A stretch of DNA of 64,000 nt from Rebecca billardiae RCC1528. Lineage: Eukaryota > Protista > Haptophyta. Shown in pieces: positions 10,973-59,915 of this stretch. Numbering within the stretch: the first letter of the stretch is position 1; each line of letters starts with the position of its first letter. Below the pieces are notes generated by a model. It was not told the origin of the DNA, ran no database searches, and saw only the letters and a program-made list of their open reading frames with translations. The position numbers were made by a program, and so were the translations under genes. The DNA lies in the NCBI GenBank assembly GCA_965240325.2, contig OZ251224.1, forward strand, positions 682,001-746,000, in the 5' to 3' direction.

Positions 10973-12264
10973 CTACATGTGGCTGCTCTGCACGCCCCCT
11001 GCGCGCAGCTGCTGCTGCATGTAGAGCCGGTGCGCGAGCATGGCGAGCATCGCCTCGTCGCCGCCGCCCGCGCTCGAGACCGGCGCCGCAGACGACGGCA
11101 GCGCGGCGGGCTGTTTCCACACGCTCGCAGGTGCGCCCGCAACCTCGGCGTGCGCCTTGCTGGGCAGTCCGGCCAGCGAGGCCGCGCCGAGCGCCGGGTT
11201 GAATGACTGCGCCCCGAAGAGGTCGAGCATGTCGGGTGCGCGCGAGTTGAAGCCCGACATCCCGACGGGCGTGTCCATCTGCGGCAGGTCATGCAGCATG
11301 TGCAGCGCGCTCGGCGTCGTCTCGGGGACCGACGGGATGCTCGGCAGGTGCTGGGCGAGCAAGGGGTTGGCGCTGCTGGCCGTCTCCGCCCACCGCGGCA
11401 TGTCTGCTGCCAGCTGCGGCGCAGACTGCGCGGGCGCGGCGGTGCGCGGCGCGTCGAGCGCCACCTGCCGCATCTGCGTGAGCATCAGCTCGACGAGGCT
11501 GGCGCGGTACGCCGATTTCGTCGGCAGCGCGTCGACGAAGAGCATCTGGTTGACGAGCTGGTCGACAAAGTGCGAGCTGTGCTCGGCGCCCGACGCCTGC
11601 GCGAGCGCCTCGAGGGTGGAGCCGAGCGCCGGCGTGCTGGCCGCGGGCATCGCGGTGGCGGCGGGCGGCACGATGGGCATCGAGCCGAGGCCGAGGCCGA
11701 GGCCGGAGGGGAGGCTGCTCGCGCCGGACACCTCCGCGGGCGCCGGGATGGTGCGGAGGTGGATGGCGCGGTAGCGGTTCTTGATGGCGTGACTCGACCG
11801 TCCGGGCAGCAGGGGCTGGAGACGCGACCAGTGCTGGGCGGCGGCGGCGGAGGGCGAGCGGGCGGGCGTGGCGCGATGTGCACCGGCACGCGCGAGGGGC
11901 GAAAGGGACGTGAGCGCGCGCGCGCGCAGACGTGCTGTGGGCGGGCGCGGCGCTCGCACGAGCGAGCTGCACACACCTTGCCGATCGCAGCGACGCCGCG
12001 AAGGATGAGGGCATCCTCCTCGTCGGACCACGGAGCGCGGTTGAGGTCGGGGCTGAGCGCGGTCTGCCAACGCTCGCGGCACTGCGCGTGTGAGCGCGTG
12101 CCGTGCTGCTGCGACACGAGCGCCCACGCGTTGGTGCCGTGGCGCATGACGAGCGAGCGCAGGCGCTCGTCCTCCTCCGTCGACCACGTGCGGCGCTGGT
12201 GGCGCCGGCGGGGTGGCCGGTCGGAGACATGATCAGATACTCGGGGTGCGGGTGATGGCGCCAT
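10973..12264 (-). CDS. R2R3-Myb transcription factor; exons 12264-11977, 11833-10973
   Basis: WSTEEDERL..HGTNAW..RSHAQCRERW..LSPDLNRAPWSDEED..GK|HWSRL..LLPGRSSHAIKNRY. GT-AG intron 11976-11834 restores repeat R3. Confidence 0.9.
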
Positions 12265-25222: not shown

Positions 25223-28200
25223 TCAGCGCTTCTGCCGCTTGGGCTTGGCGGCGTCAGACACACCCTGTCGCACGGGCGGGGCCAACGCGGTGCATACATC
25301 CGGGGATCAAGCGCGCATGCTCAGCCAAGCCACGCCCGCGCGGCGGCGCACACACGCGAGTCTCGCTCGGCGATGCGACGAGTCGGCGTGCTGGCCGCGC
25401 GCGCAACGCGCATCGTCGGCCGACGGAGCGCGCGTTGCGGGGCGCGAGCGCGGGCGCGGCGAGCGCGCACGTTTGACGCCGCGGGCCACTTGAAGCTGAG
25501 CACCTCGGGCATGTCATCGCCGTGCTCCCAGATGTACTCGGCGTGCTCCTTGAGCTTCGACTCGAGCTCGGCGATCAGCGGCGCGTCGTTGGTCGTGCGG
25601 CGCAGCACGTCGAGCGCGAGGTGCCAGCGCGACATCTCGTTGACGACCGTCATGTCGTACGGCGTGGTCGTCGAGCCCTCCTCGATGTACCCGTGCACGG
25701 AGAAGCGCGCCGAGTCCGGCCGCTCGTGCACGAGGCCGGGGACCAGCGTCGGGTAGCCGTGGAACGCCATCACCACCGGCACGCCCGCGCCGCCGAACAG
25801 CGCCTCGAACTGCTCGGCGGGCAGCCCGCGCGGGTGGAGGTGCGGCACGCGCAGCCGCAGCAGCTCGAGCACGTTCACGAAGCGCAGCCGCACGGCCGGC
25901 GCCTTCTCGCGGAGCCACGCCGCGGCGGCGAGCGCCTCGAGCGTGGGCACGTCGCCCGCGCTCGCGAGCACGACGTCCGGTCCGCGGCCAGCCCCGCCGC
26001 CGCCGAGCGAGGGCGAGGACGCCCACGCCCACTCGCTGATGCCGGCCGCGGCGTGCGCCTCTGCGGCGGCGGGCTCGAGCCACTGCGGCATCATGTGCTT
26101 GCCCGCGACGATCGCGTTGATCCGGTGCATCGAGCGCAGGCACGCGGCCGTGGTCGCCAGCAGCGTGTTCGCGTCCGCGGGCAGGAAGATGTTCGCGACC
26201 GAGCCCTTCTTGCTCGCCAGCTGGTCGAGGAAGCCGGGCGCCTGGTGCGTGTACCCGTTGTGGTCCTGCCGCCACGTGTGCGAGGTGAGGATGTAGTTGA
26301 GCGACGGGTACGGCCGGCGCCACTCGAGCTCGGCCGTCGCCTTGAGCCACTTGGCGTGCTGGTTCATCATCGAGTCCACCACCTGCGTGAACGCCTCGTA
26401 CGTGGGGAAGAGGCCGTGCCGGCCCGTGAGCGTGTACCCCTCGAGCCAGCCCTGGCAGCAGTGCTCGGACAAGATCTCCATCACGCGCCCGTCCGCGGAC
26501 ATGTTCGCGTCGCCCGGCGCGCCCTCCCACGTCGCGACGCGGCCCGTCGCCTCGAAGACGCTCGCCAGCCGGTTGGACGTGATCTCGTCCGGGCACATGA
26601 TCCGGAAGTTCTTCGCCGCCTCGTTGCGCCGGAACGTGTCGCGCAGCAGCGGGCCGAGCGCGCTCGTGCACTCGGCCTCGACCGCGCCGGGCGCGGGCAC
26701 GGGTAGCATGTACTCGCGCGGCGGCGGCACGTCGAGCGGGACGACGAGCTCGCCGCCGTTGGCGTGCGGCGTCGCGCTCATCCGGAGCGTGCCGCTGGGC
26801 GTGAGCGCGCGCAGCTCGGCGATCGGCGCGCCCGTGCGCGGCTCGAACAGCTCGGCGGGGCGGTAGCTCTGCAGCCAGCCCTCGAGGATCTGCAGGTGCG
26901 CGCCGCCCTGCTTGCACTTGGCGGCTGGCACCTGGTGCGCGCGGAAGGTGCCCTCGACGAGCACGCCGTCGATCTCGCGCGGGCCCGTCCAGCCCTTGGG
27001 CGTGCGCAGCACGATCATGGGCCAGCGCGGGCGCACGGCCTCCGCCGCCGGCCGCGCGCGCGCCGCGTGCCAGATGGCGTGCACGCGCGTCACGCAGTGG
27101 TCGAGCGCACTCGCCATCAGCTGGTGCATCGTCGCCGGGTCGTCGCCCTCGACGAAGACGGGCTCGTGGCCGTAGCCGATGAGCAGGCTCTCCAGCTCGG
27201 CGCGCGGCAGTCGCGAGAGCAGCGTCGCGCCGCCGATCTTCGCGCCGTTCAGGTGCAGCACCGGCAGCACCGCGCCGTCGCGCGCCGGGTTGACAAACTT
27301 GGTCGAGTGCCAAGACGCCGCGCACGGACCCGTCTGCGCGCGCGCGGAGGGAGCGGGCGGCGGCGAGCGGGGGCACGCGCGCGCGGGCCGCGCATGAGCG
27401 TCCGCTTGGGCGGCTGGGGCGTGGCAGGGGCGAGCGGGCGGCCGGCAAGGGCGCGCGCGTGGCCGTCGTCGGTGCCGCGCGGTGGGCGCGCGGCTGGCTG
27501 CCCAAACCAGCGGCGGCGCGCGACAATGTGCGCACACCTCAGCCTCGCCATCGCCCACGACGCAGCAGACGATGAGCTCGGGGTTATCCAGCGCAGCTCC
27601 GTACGCGTGGAGCAGGCAGTAGCCCAGCTCGCCGCCCTCGTGCAGCGAGCCCGGACAGTCCGGAGAGACGTGCGAGGGGATGCCGCGCGGCCATGAGAAC
27701 TGCTTGAAGAGGTGGCAGAGCCCATCGTAGTCCTGGGTGATCTTGGGGTAGCGCTCGGTGTACGAGCCTTCCAAGTAGGCGTTCGCCACGATGCCTGGCC
27801 CGCCGTGCCCCGGACCGCACACCAGCAGCATCTGCGCCGAGCGCGCCGTGATGATGCTGCGCGCCAAGCGGGGCGCGCGACATGCGCGCGGGCCGCTGGC
27901 CGTGAGCGGCGCGGTGGAGGCTTGCCAACGCGTGCGCACGGGGGCTGGGGGGGAGGGGCACGAATCGCCACCAACGCGCGCGCAATTTTGCAGCCGCTCA
28001 TGTCGCGCTCTTCCCCCCGCCGTGAGCTGCACGCACCGATTCACGTGCGCATAAACGAGGTTCAAGCCCGGGCACGTGCCCCAGTGACCGAGCAGGCGCG
28101 TCTTGATGTGCTCGGGCTTGAGCGGCTCGCGGAGCAGCGGGTTTGCACGGAGGTAGATCTGCCCAACCGTGAGGTAGTTCGCCGCGCGCCAGAACGCGTC

Positions 28201-28245
28201 GATCAGGCGCAGCTGCTCGGCGGAGAGCGGGCCCACTGTCGTCAT
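25223..28245 (-). CDS. xfp: Xylulose-5-P/fructose-6-P phosphoketolase; exons 28245-28037, 27856-27538, 27333-25471, and predicted 25264-25223
   Basis: WRAANYLTVGQIYL, GHWGT, GPGHG, HEGGELGY, GDGEAE|TGP, LHLNGAKI, LSEHCCQGWLEGY and WRQDHNGYTHQ. Two in-frame stop-free introns. The last exon is inferred. Confidence 0.92.
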
Positions 28246-41751: not shown

Positions 41752-42879
41752 ATGTCGAGCGAGCGGCCGTCGCCGCTCGCACGCAAGCTGCCGCGCTTTG
41801 CGCTGGTCAACTTGATCGTGTGCACCGTCGCGGCGGCCTCTCACGGCATTGGCACCCTCGCGGGCGACGGCTTTGCGAGCCTTTGGCTCAGCTCGTGCAT
41901 CAGATGCGCGCTCAGCGTGGGCGTGATCACATGGCTCACGCGGCGCGCGGCGCCGATCGGCCCGCGTCGTGATGGCCCGACACGCGCCGAAGCCCGCATC
42001 ATCTGGCTGAAGGTGGCGCTCCTGTCCGCCCCTTCAGACGCGCTCGCGCTCACGCTGGCGGCCCGCCTGGCGTTGGGCGGCGGCCGGTCAGCGACTCCCG
42101 CTCTCCTCATGCGCCCGGCGGTGTTCGTGCTGCAGTCGTTCGTCTGGGAGCTGGTGTTCGACTTTTTCCACTACTGGGTCCATCGCGCCTGCCACAGCTC
42201 GCCGCTGGCCTACCGGCTGGTGCACAAGGCGCACCACCGGTACGCGGCGCCATCGCCGCTCACGACGTTTGCGCACGCGCCGCTCGACGTGCTCGCGTCC
42301 AACCTCGTGCCGGCGCTGCTCGCGTTCTGCACGCTCGCGCTGATGGGCGCGCCCATCGTCGGCGTGTCCGAGCGCCAGCTCCTCTTCGCCTACAAGTCCT
42401 ACGTCGAGGTCGCCGGTCACGCGGGCGTGGACGCGCGGCCGCGCTCGTTCCCGCAGTTCACGTGGCTGCCTTCCGCCATCCCGGCGCGCGGCGTGACGGG
42501 CAGGGGCGGGATCACGGCGCACACGCGGGAGCACGACTGGCATCACGCGGTGCTCCGGTGCAACTTCTCTAAGCGCTTCCGCGTGTGGGACATCCTGTTT
42601 GGCACGTACGAGGAGCCGCCACCGCTGGCAGCGGCATGCGAGCCGGCGGCGCCGTGCGACAGCGGCGTGCGCCCACTCAAGGCTGCTGGGGCGGCGGCTG
42701 GGCCTGAGCCGCGGCCGTCCTCGGCGGCTGGCGGCGCGCGCATGGCGGCCGACGGGCCGGCTAGCGCGACTGAGAGAGAGGTCGCGCTCGCAAAGGCGGC
42801 GCCTCGCTCGCGGCTCCACGCACCATCGGCCGGCCGAGCACTCCGGCACCGCGTGTGCGAAGTGAATGGTTTTGGTTGA
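41752..42879 (+). CDS. Fatty acid hydroxylase / sterol desaturase superfamily protein
   Basis: His boxes FDFFHYWVHRACH, VHKAHH, GHAG and HDWHH, then NFSKRFRVWDILFGT. Confidence 0.88.
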   Translation: MSSERPSPLARKLPRFALVNLIVCTVAAASHGIGTLAGDGFASLWLSSCIRCALSVGVITWLTRRAAPIGPRRDGPTRAEARIIWLKVALLSAPSDALALTLAARLALGGGRSATPALLMRPAVFVLQSFVWELVFDFFHYWVHRACHSSPLAYRLVHKAHHRYAAPSPLTTFAHAPLDVLASNLVPALLAFCTLALMGAPIVGVSERQLLFAYKSYVEVAGHAGVDARPRSFPQFTWLPSAIPARGVTGRGGITAHTREHDWHHAVLRCNFSKRFRVWDILFGTYEEPPPLAAACEPAAPCDSGVRPLKAAGAAAGPEPRPSSAAGGARMAADGPASATEREVALAKAAPRSRLHAPSAGRALRHRVCEVNGFG

Positions 42880-43450: not shown

Positions 43451-45382
<1,932 letters not shown>

Positions 45383-47292: not shown

Positions 47293-49071
47293 CTAGCTCA
47301 CGGTCGAGCGGTGCATGAACTGGTCGATGCGCATGGAGCCATTGGCTGCTGCGTCGGCGGCCGCGCCCTTCGGCCGCTTCGTGCCACCCGCCGCCGCGCC
47401 GCCGCCGCCGCCGCGCTTCCCGCGCGCTGGCGCGCCCTCCGCGTACGCGCGCGCGCACTCGACCGCCTTGCCCACCGCGCTGGACGTGCCCTTCGAGTCG
47501 AGCTCGGCCAGCGGGAGCCAGCAGCTCTCGACGGCCGCGGCGCCCTTGGCGGCCCGGGCACGCGGGGCGGGCTCGGCCTCGAGGGCCACCCACTCCACGT
47601 GCATGATGTGCTTGAGGTGGGAGAAGGTGTGCACCAGGCAGCGCTCGGCGCCCGCGCCGTCGACTGTGAGCAGCCTGCGCTGCAGCACGCGCGAGTCGCG
47701 CAGCTCGACGCCCAGCGGCCGCAGCACGCCGTCCAGCGCCGCCGAGGGCTCGTCGGCGGCGGACGCCGGCTCGGACGAGAGCGCGCCGTCGGGCGTCGCG
47801 CCCTCGCCCGCGCCCCCGCCGAGCTCCGCCGTGGGCAGCTCCCAGAGCCCGGCGAGCAGCTTTGGGTTCTTTGCGCCCGCGCCGCGCGTCTCTGGGCGCT
47901 TGAGCAGCAGCAGCTGGCCGGCGCGCCAGAGGGCCGCGCGGCGCGCGCCCGCGGAGGGGAGGGCGGCCGCCGCGCGCGCGGCCTCGGGTGTGACGCGCTG
48001 GAGCACGCACACCGCCAGCCGCGTCTCGCGCGGCGCACTCTTGGGCGCCACGCTCGGGAAGCGCGTCACCGGCCTGTGTGCGCGCGCGAGGCCGGCAGCG
48101 GGCGGGTTAGGGTTGAGGGTGTGAGGGTTAGGGTTGAGGGTGTGAGGGCGCGGGGCGGAGCACGCGCCGCTGCCCCTGGAGTGCGCGGCGCGGCCGCCGT
48201 CGCGCACGAGGCGCGCGCACCCGTCGCCGGCGTCCGCCTGCGCGCGCGCGCGGCAGTCCGCCCTGAGCGGGCACTCGCCGCACGCCGGCGCCGCCTTGGC
48301 GCACAGCGTGGCGCCCAGCTCCATCATCGCCTGGTTGAACGCGCCCGGCCGCTCGCAGCCCGCCATCAGCTCGGCGCCGAGCCGCCACCACAGCTTGGTG
48401 GTCGAGGTGGCCTTCGGGTTGGCGTCGACGGCGCGCAGCCGCGCGAGCACGCGGATCACGTTGCCGTCGACCACGGCCTGCTGCTCGCCGTACACGATCG
48501 ACGAGATGGCCGCCGCCGTGTACGGGCCGACGCCCTTCACCTTGGCCCAGCCCTCGACGCTACACGGGGGCACGCCGCCGCGCTCGCGCACGATCTGCTG
48601 CGCGCCCTCGAGGAGGAAGGCGGCGCGGCGGTAGTACCCGAGCCCGCTCCACACCTGCCGCACCTCGTCGATGGACGCCTCGGCCAGCGCCCCCAGCGTG
48701 GGGAAGCGAGCCATCCAGCGCTCGAAATACGGCACCACGCGATCCACCTGCGTCTGCTGCAGCATCACCTCGGAGACCCACACGCGATAGGCCCACTGCG
48801 CGCGCTCGTCGTCGTCAATGCACGCCGTGTCCGCCTCCTCGCGCCGCCAAGGCATCTGCCGGTGGCCGGCGTCATACCAGGCCAGCCAGCTCGACTGCAA
48901 GCGCCGCGCGTCGCGCCCAGAGCCAAACGTGTGCGCCGCATGCAGCTCCTCGAGGTCGGGGGCGGGCGAGGCCATGAGGGTGGAGCGCGCGCGCGCTGCG
49001 TTCGACGCTGGCGGGACGAAGGCGTGACGCGCCACGAGCCCGCGCGAGAGCAGGCAGAGCACGAGCGCCGT
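47293..49071 (-). CDS. MUTYH: A/G-specific adenine DNA glycosylase (MutY/MUTYH); intron 48220-48074; first AUG 48975, candidate ACG start 49071
   Basis: YRVWVSEVMLQQTQV, WSGLGYYRRA, GVGPYTAAAI, VDGNVIRV, FNQAMMELGATLC..P.C..CPL...C (4Fe-4S), LAGLWELP and HTFSH. Confidence 0.93.
   Translation of the reverse strand, partial: TALVLCLLSRGLVARHAFVPPASNAARARSTLMASPAPDLEELHAAHTFGSGRDARRLQSSWLAWYDAGHRQMPWRREEADTACIDDDERAQWAYRVWVSEVMLQQTQVDRVVPYFERWMARFPTLGALAEASIDEVRQVWSGLGYYRRAAFLLEGAQQIVRERGGVPPCSVEGWAKVKGVGPYTAAAISSIVYGEQQAVVDGNVIRVLARLRAVDANPKATSTTKLWWRLGAELMAGCERPGAFNQAMMELGATLCAKAAPACGECPLRADCRARAQADAGDGCARLVRDGGRAAHSRGSGACSAPRPHTLNPNPHTLNPNPPAAGLARAHRPVTRFPSVAPKSAPRETRLAVCVLQRVTPEAARAAAALPSAGARRAALWRAGQLLLLKRPETRGAGAKNPKLLAGLWELPTAELGGGAGEGATPDGALSSEPASAADEPSAALDGVLRPLGVELRDSRVLQRRLLTVDGAGAERCLVHTFSHLKHIMHVEWVALEAEPAPRARAAKGAAAVESCWLPLAELDSKGTSSAVGKAVECARAYAEGAPARGKRGGGGGAAAGGTKRPKGAAADAAANGSMRIDQFMHRSTVS
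48104..48148. repeat. Telomere-like degenerate repeat inside the MUTYH intron
   Basis: (GGGTTAGGGTTGAGGGTGTGA)x2 + GGG on the + strand. Confidence 0.85.
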
Positions 49072-49263
49072 GGCTGTCGGTGATCGGTCCGATATCGCGT
49101 GCGCCGCGGGAAAGCGCGCGAGCCCGCCGGTCGCTCCGGAAGCGAAAGTCCGGAGTGCTCAGCTTCAAGCTGGCTGGCGCTCAGCTGGCGGAGGAACCAC
49201 AGTCGGCACTCCGCAAGTCCACTTGATGTCTGCCGGCGGCGGGCGTCGGCTGGCGGAGCTTCC

Positions 49264-50430
49264 ATGGCCACCTCGGACGAGTCAGAGCACGCGGTGCTCC
49301 TAGGCCTCGACGACGATCTCCTGCGGGCGATCGTCGAGGCCACTCCGCGGGAAGACGAGCTCGCGTGCGCGCTCGTTTGCAGGCGGCTGCGTGACCTCAA
49401 CACGCGGCGCCCTCTGCGCACGCCACTATGCGCCCTCGTGCGATCGGCAGCGCGGCTGCAGTGGGGCCTGGGGCTGGGGGCGCCGGTGGGGCCTGAGCTC
49501 TGCGCGGCGGTGGCGTCAACTGGTAGCGTGGATGACCTCCAGCTCGTCCTCAGCCGCGCCAGCCCAGACACCTCCGAGCCACTCCTCACGCAGCACGTGA
49601 GCTATGCGGCCGCACTCGGAGGGCACCTCGGCGCTCTGCGCTGGCTCAGGTGGCGCGAGTGCCCAATGGGGAAGTCGACGTGCCGAGCCGCCGCGCTCGG
49701 CGGGCACTTACACACGCTGCGCGTCCTGCGCGAGGAGTTCGCGCTCCCGTGGGGCGAGGGCACCGTGAACGCAGCCGCAGCCAGCGGCGTGGTCGAGGTG
49801 GTTGACTTTGCGGTCGCGAGCGGCTGCCCGTTCGAGGAGCATGCGTGCCTGCTCGCGGCGCGCGGTGGGCATCTGCCCATCCTCGAGTACCTCCGGGCTC
49901 GCTCGTGCCCGTGGGAGCCTGACCGGTGCGCCAGCGCGTGCGCCAAGGGAGCGAGCGCGGGTGTGCTCAGTGCGCTGGCGCGCCTGCTGGACAGGCCGCA
50001 TGCGCACCTGCTCCGCTCGACGCACGCGATGCAGCTCGCGGCAGAGTGCATTGGCTACGTGCAGACGATGGCGTGGCTGCATGCCAATGGAGGCCCTGCG
50101 TGGTGCCGGGGATGGGTCGTCGCTCGGCTTGGATCCAGCCCGCTCCTGCACCTGGCCCGGCTGCTTGGCATCTCCGCCTCTGCCCGTCCCTGCAGCCTTG
50201 TAATGCCATCGCAGGCGGTGCACGACACCGTCGGCGGGCTCCTCAGCAGGCGCCGGACTCACACCGACGCGCCGCGTGAAGCATCACGGGGCGACACGCA
50301 TCGCAGCACGTCACCCGGAGGGCGCCCACCACACGCAGACGATCGTCCTGCTGCTGTTGAGACGCTGGCAACCGCTCTCAGGAGCTTGGACAGCCTCGTC
50401 AGCATTCAGCAGAGTCGTTGCCAATGCTGA
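49264..50430 (+). CDS. F-box-like + ankyrin-repeat protein (algal/giant-virus-type ankyrin repeats)
   Basis: N-terminal LLGLDDDLLRAIV..ACALVCRRLR; repeats AALGGHLGALRWL..CP, AALGGHLHTL..PW and AARGGHLPILEYL..CPW. Confidence 0.75.
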   Translation: MATSDESEHAVLLGLDDDLLRAIVEATPREDELACALVCRRLRDLNTRRPLRTPLCALVRSAARLQWGLGLGAPVGPELCAAVASTGSVDDLQLVLSRASPDTSEPLLTQHVSYAAALGGHLGALRWLRWRECPMGKSTCRAAALGGHLHTLRVLREEFALPWGEGTVNAAAASGVVEVVDFAVASGCPFEEHACLLAARGGHLPILEYLRARSCPWEPDRCASACAKGASAGVLSALARLLDRPHAHLLRSTHAMQLAAECIGYVQTMAWLHANGGPAWCRGWVVARLGSSPLLHLARLLGISASARPCSLVMPSQAVHDTVGGLLSRRRTHTDAPREASRGDTHRSTSPGGRPPHADDRPAAVETLATALRSLDSLVSIQQSRCQC

Positions 50431-56384: not shown

Positions 56385-59300
56385 ATGCAGAAGGCCATCC
56401 GCGAGTGCAATGGCAAGCGGCTGATGAGCAAGTACATGCGCGACGAGGCGGGCGCCCAACTCTACCACTGCCAGGCCGCGCAGATCAAGTCCCTCGACGA
56501 CCTCGACGCGCTGCCGGCGCAGGAGCCGTGGCTGCTGTCGTCCAAGCTCGTCGTCAAGCCTGACCAGCTGATCAAGCGGCGCGGGAAGGCGGGGCTGGTG
56601 AAGATCGGGCTGGACTGGGACGGCGTCAAGGCGCAGGTGCGCGAGTGGATGGGCGCCACCATCGAGGTCGAGGGCGTGAAGGGCAAGCTCGACACGTTCA
56701 TCGTCGAGCCGATGGCGGCGATGACCAACGAGTTCTACGTCGCCATCTACTCGTCGCGCGAGGAGGACACGATCCTGTTCTACCACGAGGGCGGCGTGGA
56801 CGTGGGCGACGTAGATGCCAAGGCGAGCAAGCTCAACGTCGCCGTCGGCGAGGTCAGCAGCGTGACGGGCGCGCGCGTGACGGGCGCGCTGCTCGGCCAG
56901 GTGCCGGCCGAGCTCCAGCCGCGCCTCGCGACCTTCGTGTGCGCGCTGTACCGCTTCTACGTCGAGCTGGCGTTCACGTACCTGGAGATCAACCCGATCG
57001 TGCTCGTCGGCGACTCGGTCGTCCCGCTCGACCTCGCCGCCAAGGTGGACCTCACCGCGCAGCACGACCTCGCGGACAAGTGGGGCGACCTCGACATGCC
57101 CGCGCCGTTTGGCCGCTCGCGCACGCCGGAGGAGGCGTACGTCGAGGCGCTGGACGAGAAGACGGGCGCGTCGCTCAAGCTGACGGTGCTCAACCCGAAC
57201 GGCCGCGTGTGGACCATGGTCGCCGGCGGCGGCGCCTCCGTCATCTACGCCGACACGATCTGCGACATGGGGTTTGCCGCCGACCTGTGCAACTACGGCG
57301 AGTACTCGGGCGCGCCCACCAAGCAGCACACCTTCGAGTACGCCAAGACGATCCTCTCGCTGATGACGCGCGAGCCGGTGGACACGCCGGGGTACGTGCC
57401 GAAGGGGAAGGTGCTGATCATCGGCGGCGGCATCGCCAACTTCACCAACGTCGCCTCCACCTTCAGCGGGATCATCCAGGCGCTCAAGCACTTCCGCGAC
57501 GCCATCATCTCGCACAAGATCGCCGTCTACGTGCGCCGCGGCGGCCCCAACTACCAGGAGGGGCTGGACGCGATGCGCGAGGCGGGCGCGAAGCTGGACA
57601 TCCCGATGCACGTGTACGGCCCCGAGACGCACCTCACTGCCATCGTGCCCATGGCCTTCACCTACCTCGACCCCACGTTCAAGGCGAAGCCGACGCTGCA
57701 GCCGCTGCCGCGCCCGTCCGCGCCCGACCCGGTCAGCAAGATGAAGTCGGCGGGCTCGGGCACCTCGCTGCCCTCGCTCGCGACGGCGGGCAGTGGCGGG
57801 CCGCACACGGGCAACGTGCCCGAGTCGCCCGGCCCGCACACCCTCTTCACGCGCGAGACCCGCTCCGTGATCTACGGGCTGCAGGTCGGCGCCGTGCAGA
57901 ACATGCTCGACTTTGACTTCTCGTGCTCGCGAGAGACGCCGTCGGTCGCGGGCATGATCTACCCGTTCGGCGGCGACCACGTGCAGAAGTTCTACTGGGG
58001 CACGAAGGAGGTGCTCGTGCCCGTGTACAAGGACACGGCGAGCGCGCTCAAGGCGCACCCCGAGGTCGACGTGATGGTCAACTTCGCCTCGCAGCGCTCG
58101 GTGTACCCCTCGGTGATGGACGCGCTCCAGTTCCCGCAGCTGCGCGTGATCGCCATCATCGCCGAGGGCGTGCCCGAGAACAAGACGCGCGAGATCAACC
58201 GGCAGGCGAAGGCGAAGGGCGTGACGATCATCGGCCCCGCCACCGTCGGCGGCATCAAGCCGGGCTGCTTCCGCATCGGCAACACCGGCGGCATGATCGA
58301 CAACTGCATCACGTGCAAGCTGCACCGGCCGGGCTCGGTCGCGTACGTCTCGCGCTCGGGCGGCATGTCCAACGAGCTCAACAACATCATGGCGATGCAC
58401 ACGAACGGCGTGTACGAGGGGATCGCGATCGGCGGCGACCGGTACCCGGGCACGACCTTCGTCGACCACATCATGCGCTACGAGGCCAACCCGAACGTCA
58501 AGATGCTCGTGCTGCTCGGCGAGGTGGGCGGCGTCGAGGAGTACGTGATCGCGGACGCGATCAAGAGCGGCAAGCTCACAAAGCCGCTGGTCGCGTGGTG
58601 CATCGGCACGTGCGCCAAGTCGTTCGACTACTCGATCTCGTTCGGCCACGCGGGCTCGGCGGCGAACTCGATGACCGAGACCTCCGAGGCCAAGAACGCC
58701 GCGCTCAAGGCCGCCGGCGCCGTCGTCCCCGACTCGTTCAACGACCTGCCCGAGGCGATCAAGCTCACGTACGACAAGCTGGTCGCGTCGGGCGCGGTCG
58801 TCGAGGGGCCCGAGCCCGCGCCGCCGCACATGCCGATGGACTACAAGTGGGCGAGCGAGCTGGGGCTGGTGCGCAAGCCCGCGGCGTTCGTCTCCACCAT
58901 CTGCGACGACCGCGGCGAGGAGCTGCTCTACGCCGGCATGTCGATCACGCGCGTGTTCGAGGAGGACATCGGCATCGGCGGCGTGCTCTCGCTGCTGTGG
59001 TTCAAGCGGCGGCTGCCGCCGTACGCGTGCAAGTTCATCGAGATGGTGCTGATGCTCACGGCGGACCACGGCCCGGCGGTGGCGGGCGCGCACAACACGA
59101 TCATCACGGCGCGCGCCGGCAAGGACATGGTCTCGTCCCTCGTCTCCGGCCTCCTCACCATCGGCCCGCGCTTTGGCGGTGCGGTCGACGGCGCGGCCGA
59201 GTGCTTCTCCAACGCCGTCGACACCGGCCTCACGCCCTCGCAGCTCATCGACGTGAAGCGCAAGCAGGGCGAGCTGCTGATGGGTGCGCGCGCGGCACGA

Positions 59301-59915
59301 GCCTGCGCTTCGCGCGCGCACGCCGTCGCTGGCGCGCCCGACGCCAGACCCAACCCCGCCGCGCGCGCGCCCGCGCCCTGGCCCGCCGCGCAGGCATCGG
59401 GCACCGCATCAAGTCGCTCGAGAACCCGGACATGCGCGTCGTCATCCTCAAGAAGTTCGTGATGGACCACTTCCCCGACTGCTCGGTGCTGAAGTACGCG
59501 CTCGAGGTGGAGAAGATCACGACGCGCAAGCGCTCCAACCTCATCCTCAACGTCGACGGCACCATCGGCTGCGCGTTCGTCGACCTGCTGCGAGGCTCGG
59601 GCGCGTTCACGCGCGACGAGGCGGACGAGTACATCAAGGCGGGCGTGCTCAACGGCCTCTTCGTGCTCGGACGCTCGATCGGCTTCATCGGCCACTTCCT
59701 CGACCAGAAGCGGCTGAGGCAGGGGCTGTACCGCCACCCGTGGGACGACATCTGCTACATGTGCGTGCGCTGCGCCGCGCCTTCCGCGCCTTCACGCCCT
59801 CCGACCGCGACCGCGGCTGAGGCGCCTTTGGTGCGCGTGTCGCCCGGTCCCCGCCCCCAGGCTGCCCACCAACACGGTCGAGTCCGTGTGCGAACCTGAG
59901 TACAAGGGCAAGTGA
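56385..59915 (+). CDS. ACLY: ATP-citrate lyase, single-chain (fused beta+alpha); exons 56385-59283, 59394-59760, 59861-59915
   Basis: [66 protein letters not shown]|IGHRIKS and [11 protein letters not shown]|LP. Confidence 0.95.

Follow-up and report, generated by a model that had tools for sequence, protein, structure and literature searches.

A candidate ACG-initiated N-terminal extension of the DNA glycosylase MUTYH in the haptophyte Rebecca billardiae

The closest described systems in which a start codon decides between two cellular destinations come from yeasts. The mitochondrial alanyl-tRNA synthetase encoded by yeast ALA1, and that encoded by ALA2 of Vanderwaltozyma polyspora (VpALA2), are translated from upstream in-frame ACG codons, and the cytosolic forms from an AUG (PMC3245939, in which ACG initiation at ALA1 is referred to Tang et al. 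2004, pmid 15358761). N-terminal extensions that start at near-cognate codons and add a mitochondrial signal constitute a general class that is widespread in yeast (PMC6582344). For Arabidopsis organellar proteins, non-AUG starts have been reported for dual-targeting presequences (Christensen et al. 2005, PMC1242274, as cited in PMC4494062), and dual targeting by alternative AUG codons has been proposed for the haptophyte POP DNA polymerase (PMC6523293). MUTYH itself is known in humans and rodents as nuclear and mitochondrial isoforms (PMC3584444, with Takao 1998/1999 and Ohtsubo 2000 as cited there). The gene considered here is the MUTYH gene on the minus strand of a 64,000-nucleotide stretch of Rebecca billardiae RCC1528 (assembly GCA_965240325.2, contig OZ251224.1, positions 682,001 to 746,000), hereafter the window, in whose coordinates all positions are given unless another sequence is named. 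A translated non-AUG N-terminal extension of the yeast ALA1 type is proposed for this gene, with a probability of about 0.6; the ACG at 49071 is most likely its start, although not the sole candidate.

The frame upstream of the MUTYH start codon

The gene is intronless, with its first AUG at 48975-48973, its stop codon at 47295-47293 and an uninterrupted open reading frame between them. Upstream of the AUG the frame stays open for 61 codons, as far as an in-frame stop at 49161-49159. The candidate near-cognate initiator (49069-49071) precedes the AUG by 32 codons in the same frame. It is embedded in ACA GCC ACG GCG and is the first in-frame near-cognate codon to combine a purine at -3, here G, with G at +4; the AUG stands in the context ctcATGg, with a pyrimidine at -3. 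The 31 codons that follow the ACG (48976-49068) would encode a putative targeting peptide, which opens with the hydrophobic run ALVLCLL, passes through HA|F and continues as an acid-free part rich in Ser, Ala and Arg; the whole has no Asp or Glu and four Arg, with a maximum Kyte-Doolittle 8-mer of 2.9-3.2. The position of the ACG, its GCC-ACG-G context, the open frame and the peptide had been put forward in an earlier sequence-only reading; coordinates and context were reproduced, and the translation of the 32 codons agrees.

An open frame is uninformative here, because at 72% GC, taken as the background for open frames (the window ranges from 59 to 80%), all three minus-strand frames of 48976-49071 are open; 75% of leader shuffles are free of stop codons, and openness alone is not above chance. 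Frame openness and acid-free composition were rejected as stand-alone evidence, since the off-frames are also open and, at this GC content, often acid-free. In its codon usage, which does rise above chance, the stretch upstream of AUG 48975 resembles coding sequence. GC content by codon position is 0.75/0.62/0.91 in the leader as against 0.74/0.59/0.95 in the MUTYH coding sequence, and the 32 codons further upstream are of a non-coding type, with a third-position value (GC3) of 0.66 and a log-likelihood ratio of -21.7. A codon model trained on the coding sequence gives frame 0 of the leader +8.9 bits and the other frames -21.6 and -11.6; the frame 0 score has z = 3.6 relative to shuffles and was reached by none of 5000 of them. 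When the model is built instead from 19 other window genes, the 32 codons preceding the ATG score from -38.6 to +19.6 bits, MUTYH ranking second of 20 with +16.4; the sole gene that scores higher, whose first ATG is preceded by 184 open codons, is probably a case of an internal exon. Moreover, the per-codon score summed upstream from the AUG has its maximum at -33, the codon next to the ACG on its 5' side. The joint occurrence of a stop-free and acid-free frame, at least three Arg or Lys and a hydrophobic 8-mer, at thresholds fixed after the data had been seen, is found in 1.2% of shuffles of the window leader and in none of 57 control upstream frames of the window.

The 5' side of the ACG is a spacer (49072-49263), inside which the MUTYH promoter and 5' end are expected, and which ends at the ATG of a divergent gene on the plus strand (49264-50430). 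This neighbour has GC values by codon position of 0.74/0.58/0.80 and weak similarity to ankyrin (Pfam Ank_4, 8.7e-5) and to F-box (0.0095, residues 12-45). In the 288 nucleotides of 48976-49263, no ATG occurs in any of the three minus-strand frames. An upstream exon with an AUG had been named in advance as one case that would overturn the reading; with an ATG-free spacer and a neighbour that starts at 49264, such a coding exon would have to lie antisense inside the neighbour.

Leaders and transcripts in related haptophytes

The DNA around the closest orthologues was compared for Pavlovales sp. CCMP2436 (L004-L006), Diacronema lutheri (L007, identical upstream to L012) and two further relatives, L003 and L001; L002 equals L001 exactly over its whole length and gives no information on splicing. 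The Met at 48973-48975, the presumed start of the main (nuclear) isoform, aligns with an annotated or internal Met in all orthologues and directly precedes the conserved motif D-[ILV]-E-[DE]-L. In CCMP2436, D. lutheri and L003 the called or annotated protein begins at this Met, the upstream frame is open, and no ATG occurs in any frame for 240-300 nucleotides. The sequence-only reading had proposed looking in orthologues for ATG or ACG, and each of these three AUG-less relatives was found to carry an in-frame ACG. There is one per leader, always with a purine at -3, at codon -37 in CCMP2436, -30 in L003 and -38 in D. lutheri, compared with -32 in the window. In L001 a genuine ATG, weak in its context (T at -3), occurs at codon -32 in addition to the same internal Met; distant algal orthologues also have AUG-started leaders, followed by that Met ahead of a D-[IV]-E-[DE]-L motif.

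The five Pavlovales-type leaders, that of the window and those of the four relatives, are 30-38 codons long, contain no Asp or Glu and three to five Arg, begin with a hydrophobic part (maximum Kyte-Doolittle 8-mer 2.3-3.2) and finish with a basic part rich in Ser, Ala and Pro. Across the five species these features are found jointly in 0.5-2.7% of shuffles per species (P = 0.005-0.027), with the CCMP2436 leader showing them only when its first residue is read as Met. What is conserved is therefore a set of features and not the residues one by one. Frame 0 scores best of the three frames under the codon model in all five species, and the codon signal is significant against shuffles in three of the four AUG-less species (z = 4.1 in L003 and 3.2 in D. 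lutheri). Identity among the four AUG-less lineages is no more than 54-65% over the enzyme domain. In D. lutheri the coding signal has its boundary at -40, near the ACG at -38.

The AUG-started leader of L001 and of several distant algae, with the same internal Met behind it, would also fit a decaying relic, in which an ancestral leader lost its AUG and only the form from AUG 48975 is still made; the public D. lutheri and CCMP2436 annotations, which begin at the internal Met, agree with this. Such a history is nevertheless considered very unlikely. All four AUG-less lineages retain the frame, the acid-free composition and the hydrophobic start, and three of them codon periodicity, although the leader sequences have diverged past alignment; a relic would be expected to lose such features.

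Transcripts are available for CCMP2436. Two independent assemblies have 5' ends 171 and 175 nucleotides upstream of the AUG, equal the genome exactly over 915-919 nucleotides, to the first intron, and retain ACG at the candidate codon. No ATG occurs in their 5' stretch of 171-175 nucleotides, and at least 60 nucleotides of transcript leader lie ahead of the ACG. Since these transcripts are unspliced and bear the ACG, a spliced upstream AUG exon and bulk C-to-U editing are excluded for CCMP2436 only. The annotated D. lutheri protein was found on its genome record only, with no matching transcript contig. These data bear on the explanation that the leader is coding and takes its normal AUG from elsewhere, either from an exon spliced to CAG|CC at 49076-49074 or by way of an assembly error that hides an ATG. 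The AG at 49075-49074 sits at the boundary of the coding signal and could act as an acceptor in splicing, L003 shares the ACAG|CC, and coding-like stretches before the ATG of other window genes are probably internal exons. D. lutheri, however, has no AG in about 40 nucleotides upstream of its ACG, the CCMP2436 transcripts run unspliced across the leader, and the antisense placement noted above would apply to any such exon in the window; moreover, the occurrence of the same ACG pattern in four species speaks against a sequencing error. A hidden AUG is thus regarded as highly improbable.

Several observations weigh against translation of the leader from the ACG. GC-rich DNA by itself gives open frames rich in Ala, Arg and Leu. 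The codon test gives no significant result for CCMP2436 (z = 0.6), the species with transcripts, or for L001 (z = 1.1), whose leader bears an AUG; since an AUG-started leader also fails it, its power on leader peptides is limited. In L003 the coding signal reaches about -40, some ten codons past the ACG at -30, and ATC at -36 offers another candidate start there. Residue-level alignment of the leaders, at both the DNA and the protein level, gave no reliable homology, and with unalignable leaders no test of nonsynonymous against synonymous substitution (Ka/Ks) is possible. An initiation-enhancing hairpin downstream of the ACG was considered and found unsupported, the RNA structure after the ACG showing nothing unusual (z from +0.1 to +1.3). 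In addition, transcription in the window species may start at or below 49071. The sequence TCACAGCC is found at the CCMP2436 transcript 5' end (L004:2825-2832), with an exact copy in L003 (2893-2900), and TCAC..ACAGCC in the window (49073-49084) resembles it; in the window and in L003 it lies just upstream, by about 10 nucleotides, of the ACG. Either an initiator-like element or chance may account for it, one shared 8-mer between 300-nucleotide sequences being the chance expectation. If a motif of this type marks the transcription start, the ACG would be only about 10 nucleotides from the cap.

Part of this evidence fits an ordinary untranslated 5' leader at 48976-49071, whose apparent reading would come from the 72% GC content and whose likeness across species would come from chance and selective looking. 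The three open frames with their largely stop-free shuffles, the lack of a significant codon signal in CCMP2436 and L001, the failure of the leaders to align, and the choice of ACG positions and feature thresholds after the fact are all in keeping with it. On the other hand, codon-position GC and codon log-likelihood are coding-like in three species and fall just upstream, frame 0 is favoured in every one of the five species, the feature combination is missing from all the control frames, and the window score is well above that of typical 5' regions of the same window. An untranslated leader is for these reasons held to be unlikely, and even when it is taken jointly with a relic the two together stay well below an even chance.

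Translation from the ACG, leaky scanning and an organellar destination are inferred, and the proposed extension would work as follows. Most ribosomes would start at AUG 48975 and produce a short form, presumably nuclear, that carries the C-terminal basic cluster together with a box resembling that of PCNA-interacting proteins (PIP). For a minority the start would lie some 96 nucleotides earlier; the near-cognate codon used there would most likely be ACG 49071, with its purine at -3 and G at +4, and this start would add a 32-residue leader that is first hydrophobic, then basic, and without acidic residues. The long form would be directed by this leader to a DNA-containing organelle, a single mRNA thereby serving two destinations as in yeast ALA1. 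That an ACG start has been kept across the Pavlovophyceae for an organelle-targeted MUTYH (in the window alga, D. lutheri, CCMP2436, L003 and possibly L010) is a more tentative proposal, whose chances are put slightly short of even.

The last of these sequences, L010 (metagenome scaffold BPAM22-1_SAMN07482704_METAG-scaffold_74382, 425-505), belongs to a distant algal MUTYH that is 56% identical to the one in the window. It has 55 open codons upstream of its AUG at 52% GC, without an in-frame ATG, and an ACG-ACG doublet at -26/-25 that abuts a hydrophobic run and recalls the tandem ACG start of yeast ALA1.

The enzyme, its C-terminal motifs and the destination of the long form

Judged by its domains and motifs, the gene product is an adenine DNA glycosylase of the MutY type (MUTYH); its best matches, in Pavlovales haptophytes, point to a host with a complex red-type plastid. 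The coding sequence downstream of the AUG, including the stop codon (47293-48972), contains Pfam PF00730 (HhH-GPD; 2.3e-22, 79.8 bits, cut-off 26.2) and PF00633 (HhH; 8e-7, 29 bits, cut-off 24), followed by a weak match to PF14815 (NUDIX_4), the MutT-like C-terminal domain by which 8-oxoguanine is recognised; at 27.3 bits this match is below the gathering score of 35, and full-length orthologues carry the domain. A motif search placed VSEVMLQQT at 48751-48777, VDGNV at 48457-48471 and a 4Fe-4S cysteine motif C-x6-C-x2-C-x5-C at 48253-48303. The first two fall in invariant columns of the orthologue alignment, and we take VSE-x-MLQQT with its catalytic Glu, VDGNV with its Asp and the iron-sulfur loop to be the defining residues of MutY. 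In the orthologue search the best E value was 9e-146 and the top matches were Pavlovales haptophytes, identity being 54% to Pavlovales sp. CCMP2436 and, over the N-terminal half, 65% to the cluster with D. lutheri KAG8470314.1. The identification as MUTYH that had been made from sequence inspection is borne out by these domains and matches. The protein collection contains no exact entry for the window protein, an N-terminal word search found no identical fragment, and a metagenome scan for nearer MUTYH relatives returned only bacterial-type MutY at up to 50% identity. The linker that joins the glycosylase domain to the MutT-like one contains a perfect tandem duplication, HTLNPNP-HTLNPNP (48103-48144, minus strand), which is lacking in the orthologues.

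Near the C-terminal end lie basic clusters resembling a nuclear localisation signal (NLS), GKRG ... TKRPK (47368-47421, minus strand), and a degenerate PIP-box-like motif, SMRIDQFM (47314-47337, minus strand). Both had been pointed out in the sequence-only reading, both are present, and orthologues match them: KRK-type clusters occur at the equivalent place, and the C-terminal ends read S-I-S-K-F-F, R-I-S-K-F-F, Q-S-I-T-R-F-F and similar, with I-x-x-F-F / Y-F boxes also seen, so that a KRK-type cluster and an I-x-x-F-[FM] box are kept among MUTYH orthologues. The likeness to a PIP box is loose, as S-M-R-I-D-Q-F-M fails the strict consensus Q-x-x-[ILM]-x-x-[FY]-[FY], having the Ile and the first aromatic residue and lacking the Gln and the second aromatic. 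Orthologues come nearer to the consensus than the window protein does, and the green-algal matches are canonical (QSITRFF). The nuclear role of MUTYH is coupled to PCNA, a role that the C-terminal cluster and box in the window fit (PMC3584444). An AUG-started isoform that ends in an NLS-like cluster and a PIP-like box would presumably be the nuclear form.

For the long form, the A|F motif had been taken as evidence of plastid import, a claim that comparison does not support. An aromatic residue after the hydrophobic part is found in two of the five leaders (F in the window, TS|FSF in CCMP2436); L003, D. lutheri and L001 lack it or have it at another position. For bipartite complex-plastid presequences ASAFind expects small residues at -3 and -1 of the signal-peptide cleavage site and F, Y, W or L at +1 of the transit peptide (PMC12136025). 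The window leader has a hydrophobic core (maximum Kyte-Doolittle 8-mer about 3), but its proposed site, ..A-R-H-A|F, departs from the -3/-1 rule, with Arg at -3 and two Arg in the c-region. On the other side, the leaders are more hydrophobic and less amphipathic than the classic mitochondrial presequence of a distant orthologue, P0006, their hydrophobic moment being 0.42-0.54 versus 0.93, and a signal-peptide-like or ambiguous dual signal cannot be dismissed. Roughly weighed, the mitochondrion would be the leading candidate destination, at a little under even odds; the plastid, alone or as one of two destinations, would follow at about one chance in three, and any other destination would be unlikely. 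The other window genes gave no informative calibration of targeting signals.

Some further observations were made on the surroundings of the gene and on the rest of the window. A NUDIX hydrolase gene (166-167 amino acids) lies convergent and just downstream of MUTYH in D. lutheri (L012:3306-3809) and CCMP2436 (L004:5436-5936); the adjacency could be a conserved pairing of 8-oxoguanine (8-oxoG) repair genes, MutY with a MutT-like enzyme. No equivalent NUDIX hydrolase open reading frame was seen adjoining MUTYH in the window. A fatty-acid hydroxylase gene stands head-to-head with MUTYH in L001 (1370-2092) and about 6 kb from it in the window (41752-42879, plus strand), possibly as a remnant of shared gene order. 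Two window genes have coding-like sequence before their ATG: the open reading frame ending at 10973 (10973-12232, minus strand), with 184 open codons before ATG 11680, the last 32 having a GC3 of 1.00, and a RIO-kinase gene, with 34 upstream codons (43788-43889, plus strand; ATG 43890) at a GC3 of 0.91. These stretches are probably upstream exons or reflect mis-set starts, and non-AUG starts are possible. The window also contains a full-length phosphoketolase with XFP N, central and C domains (25321-28245, minus strand) and a single-chain ATP-citrate lyase (56385-59462, plus strand). No Rfam match was obtained anywhere in the window, and a scan of it for bacterial promoters and terminators, a method not applicable to a eukaryote, returned nothing.

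Significance and comparison with described systems

The literature search found no described non-AUG start in a haptophyte nuclear gene and no report joining MUTYH with non-AUG initiation. If the proposed extension is real, it would be the first case of non-AUG dual targeting in haptophytes, of a kind so far shown in fungi, plants and animals. It would mean that 8-oxoG:A repair reaches an organelle genome of a haptophyte from one intronless gene, through the choice of start codon and not through alternative exons. It would also mean that annotations starting at the internal Met systematically overlook the organellar forms of nuclear genes for DNA maintenance. For D. lutheri and CCMP2436 the deposited proteins do begin at that Met, so that a localisation predictor would class them as non-organellar, and proteins of this kind could be missing from the organelle proteome inventories of complex-plastid algae.

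The window MUTYH would share with ALA1 and VpALA2 a single mRNA, an in-frame ACG that has a purine at -3 and precedes the AUG by about 25-38 codons, an acid-free, targeting-like extension, and a short form without the signal. It differs from them in the protein concerned and in the eukaryotic supergroup, and in being a case known from sequence alone. Its leader exceeds a classic mitochondrial presequence in hydrophobicity and falls short of it in amphipathicity, and its host, unlike yeast, has a four-membrane plastid as a possible destination. With the plant cases and the haptophyte POP DNA polymerase it would have in common an organellar form made in a photosynthetic eukaryote by way of an alternative upstream start; the plant cases, however, mostly involve CUG and primary plastids, and the POP proposal involves two AUG codons, whereas the candidate here is an ACG. 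Mammalian MUTYH is of the same enzyme family and likewise has PCNA-binding and NLS elements in the C-terminal part, and two N-termini, mitochondrial and nuclear, are known there and proposed here. In mammals these arise through alternative first exons or transcripts with AUG starts, whereas the MUTYH gene of the window has a single 5' region without an upstream AUG, from which both forms would be made by the choice between ACG and AUG.

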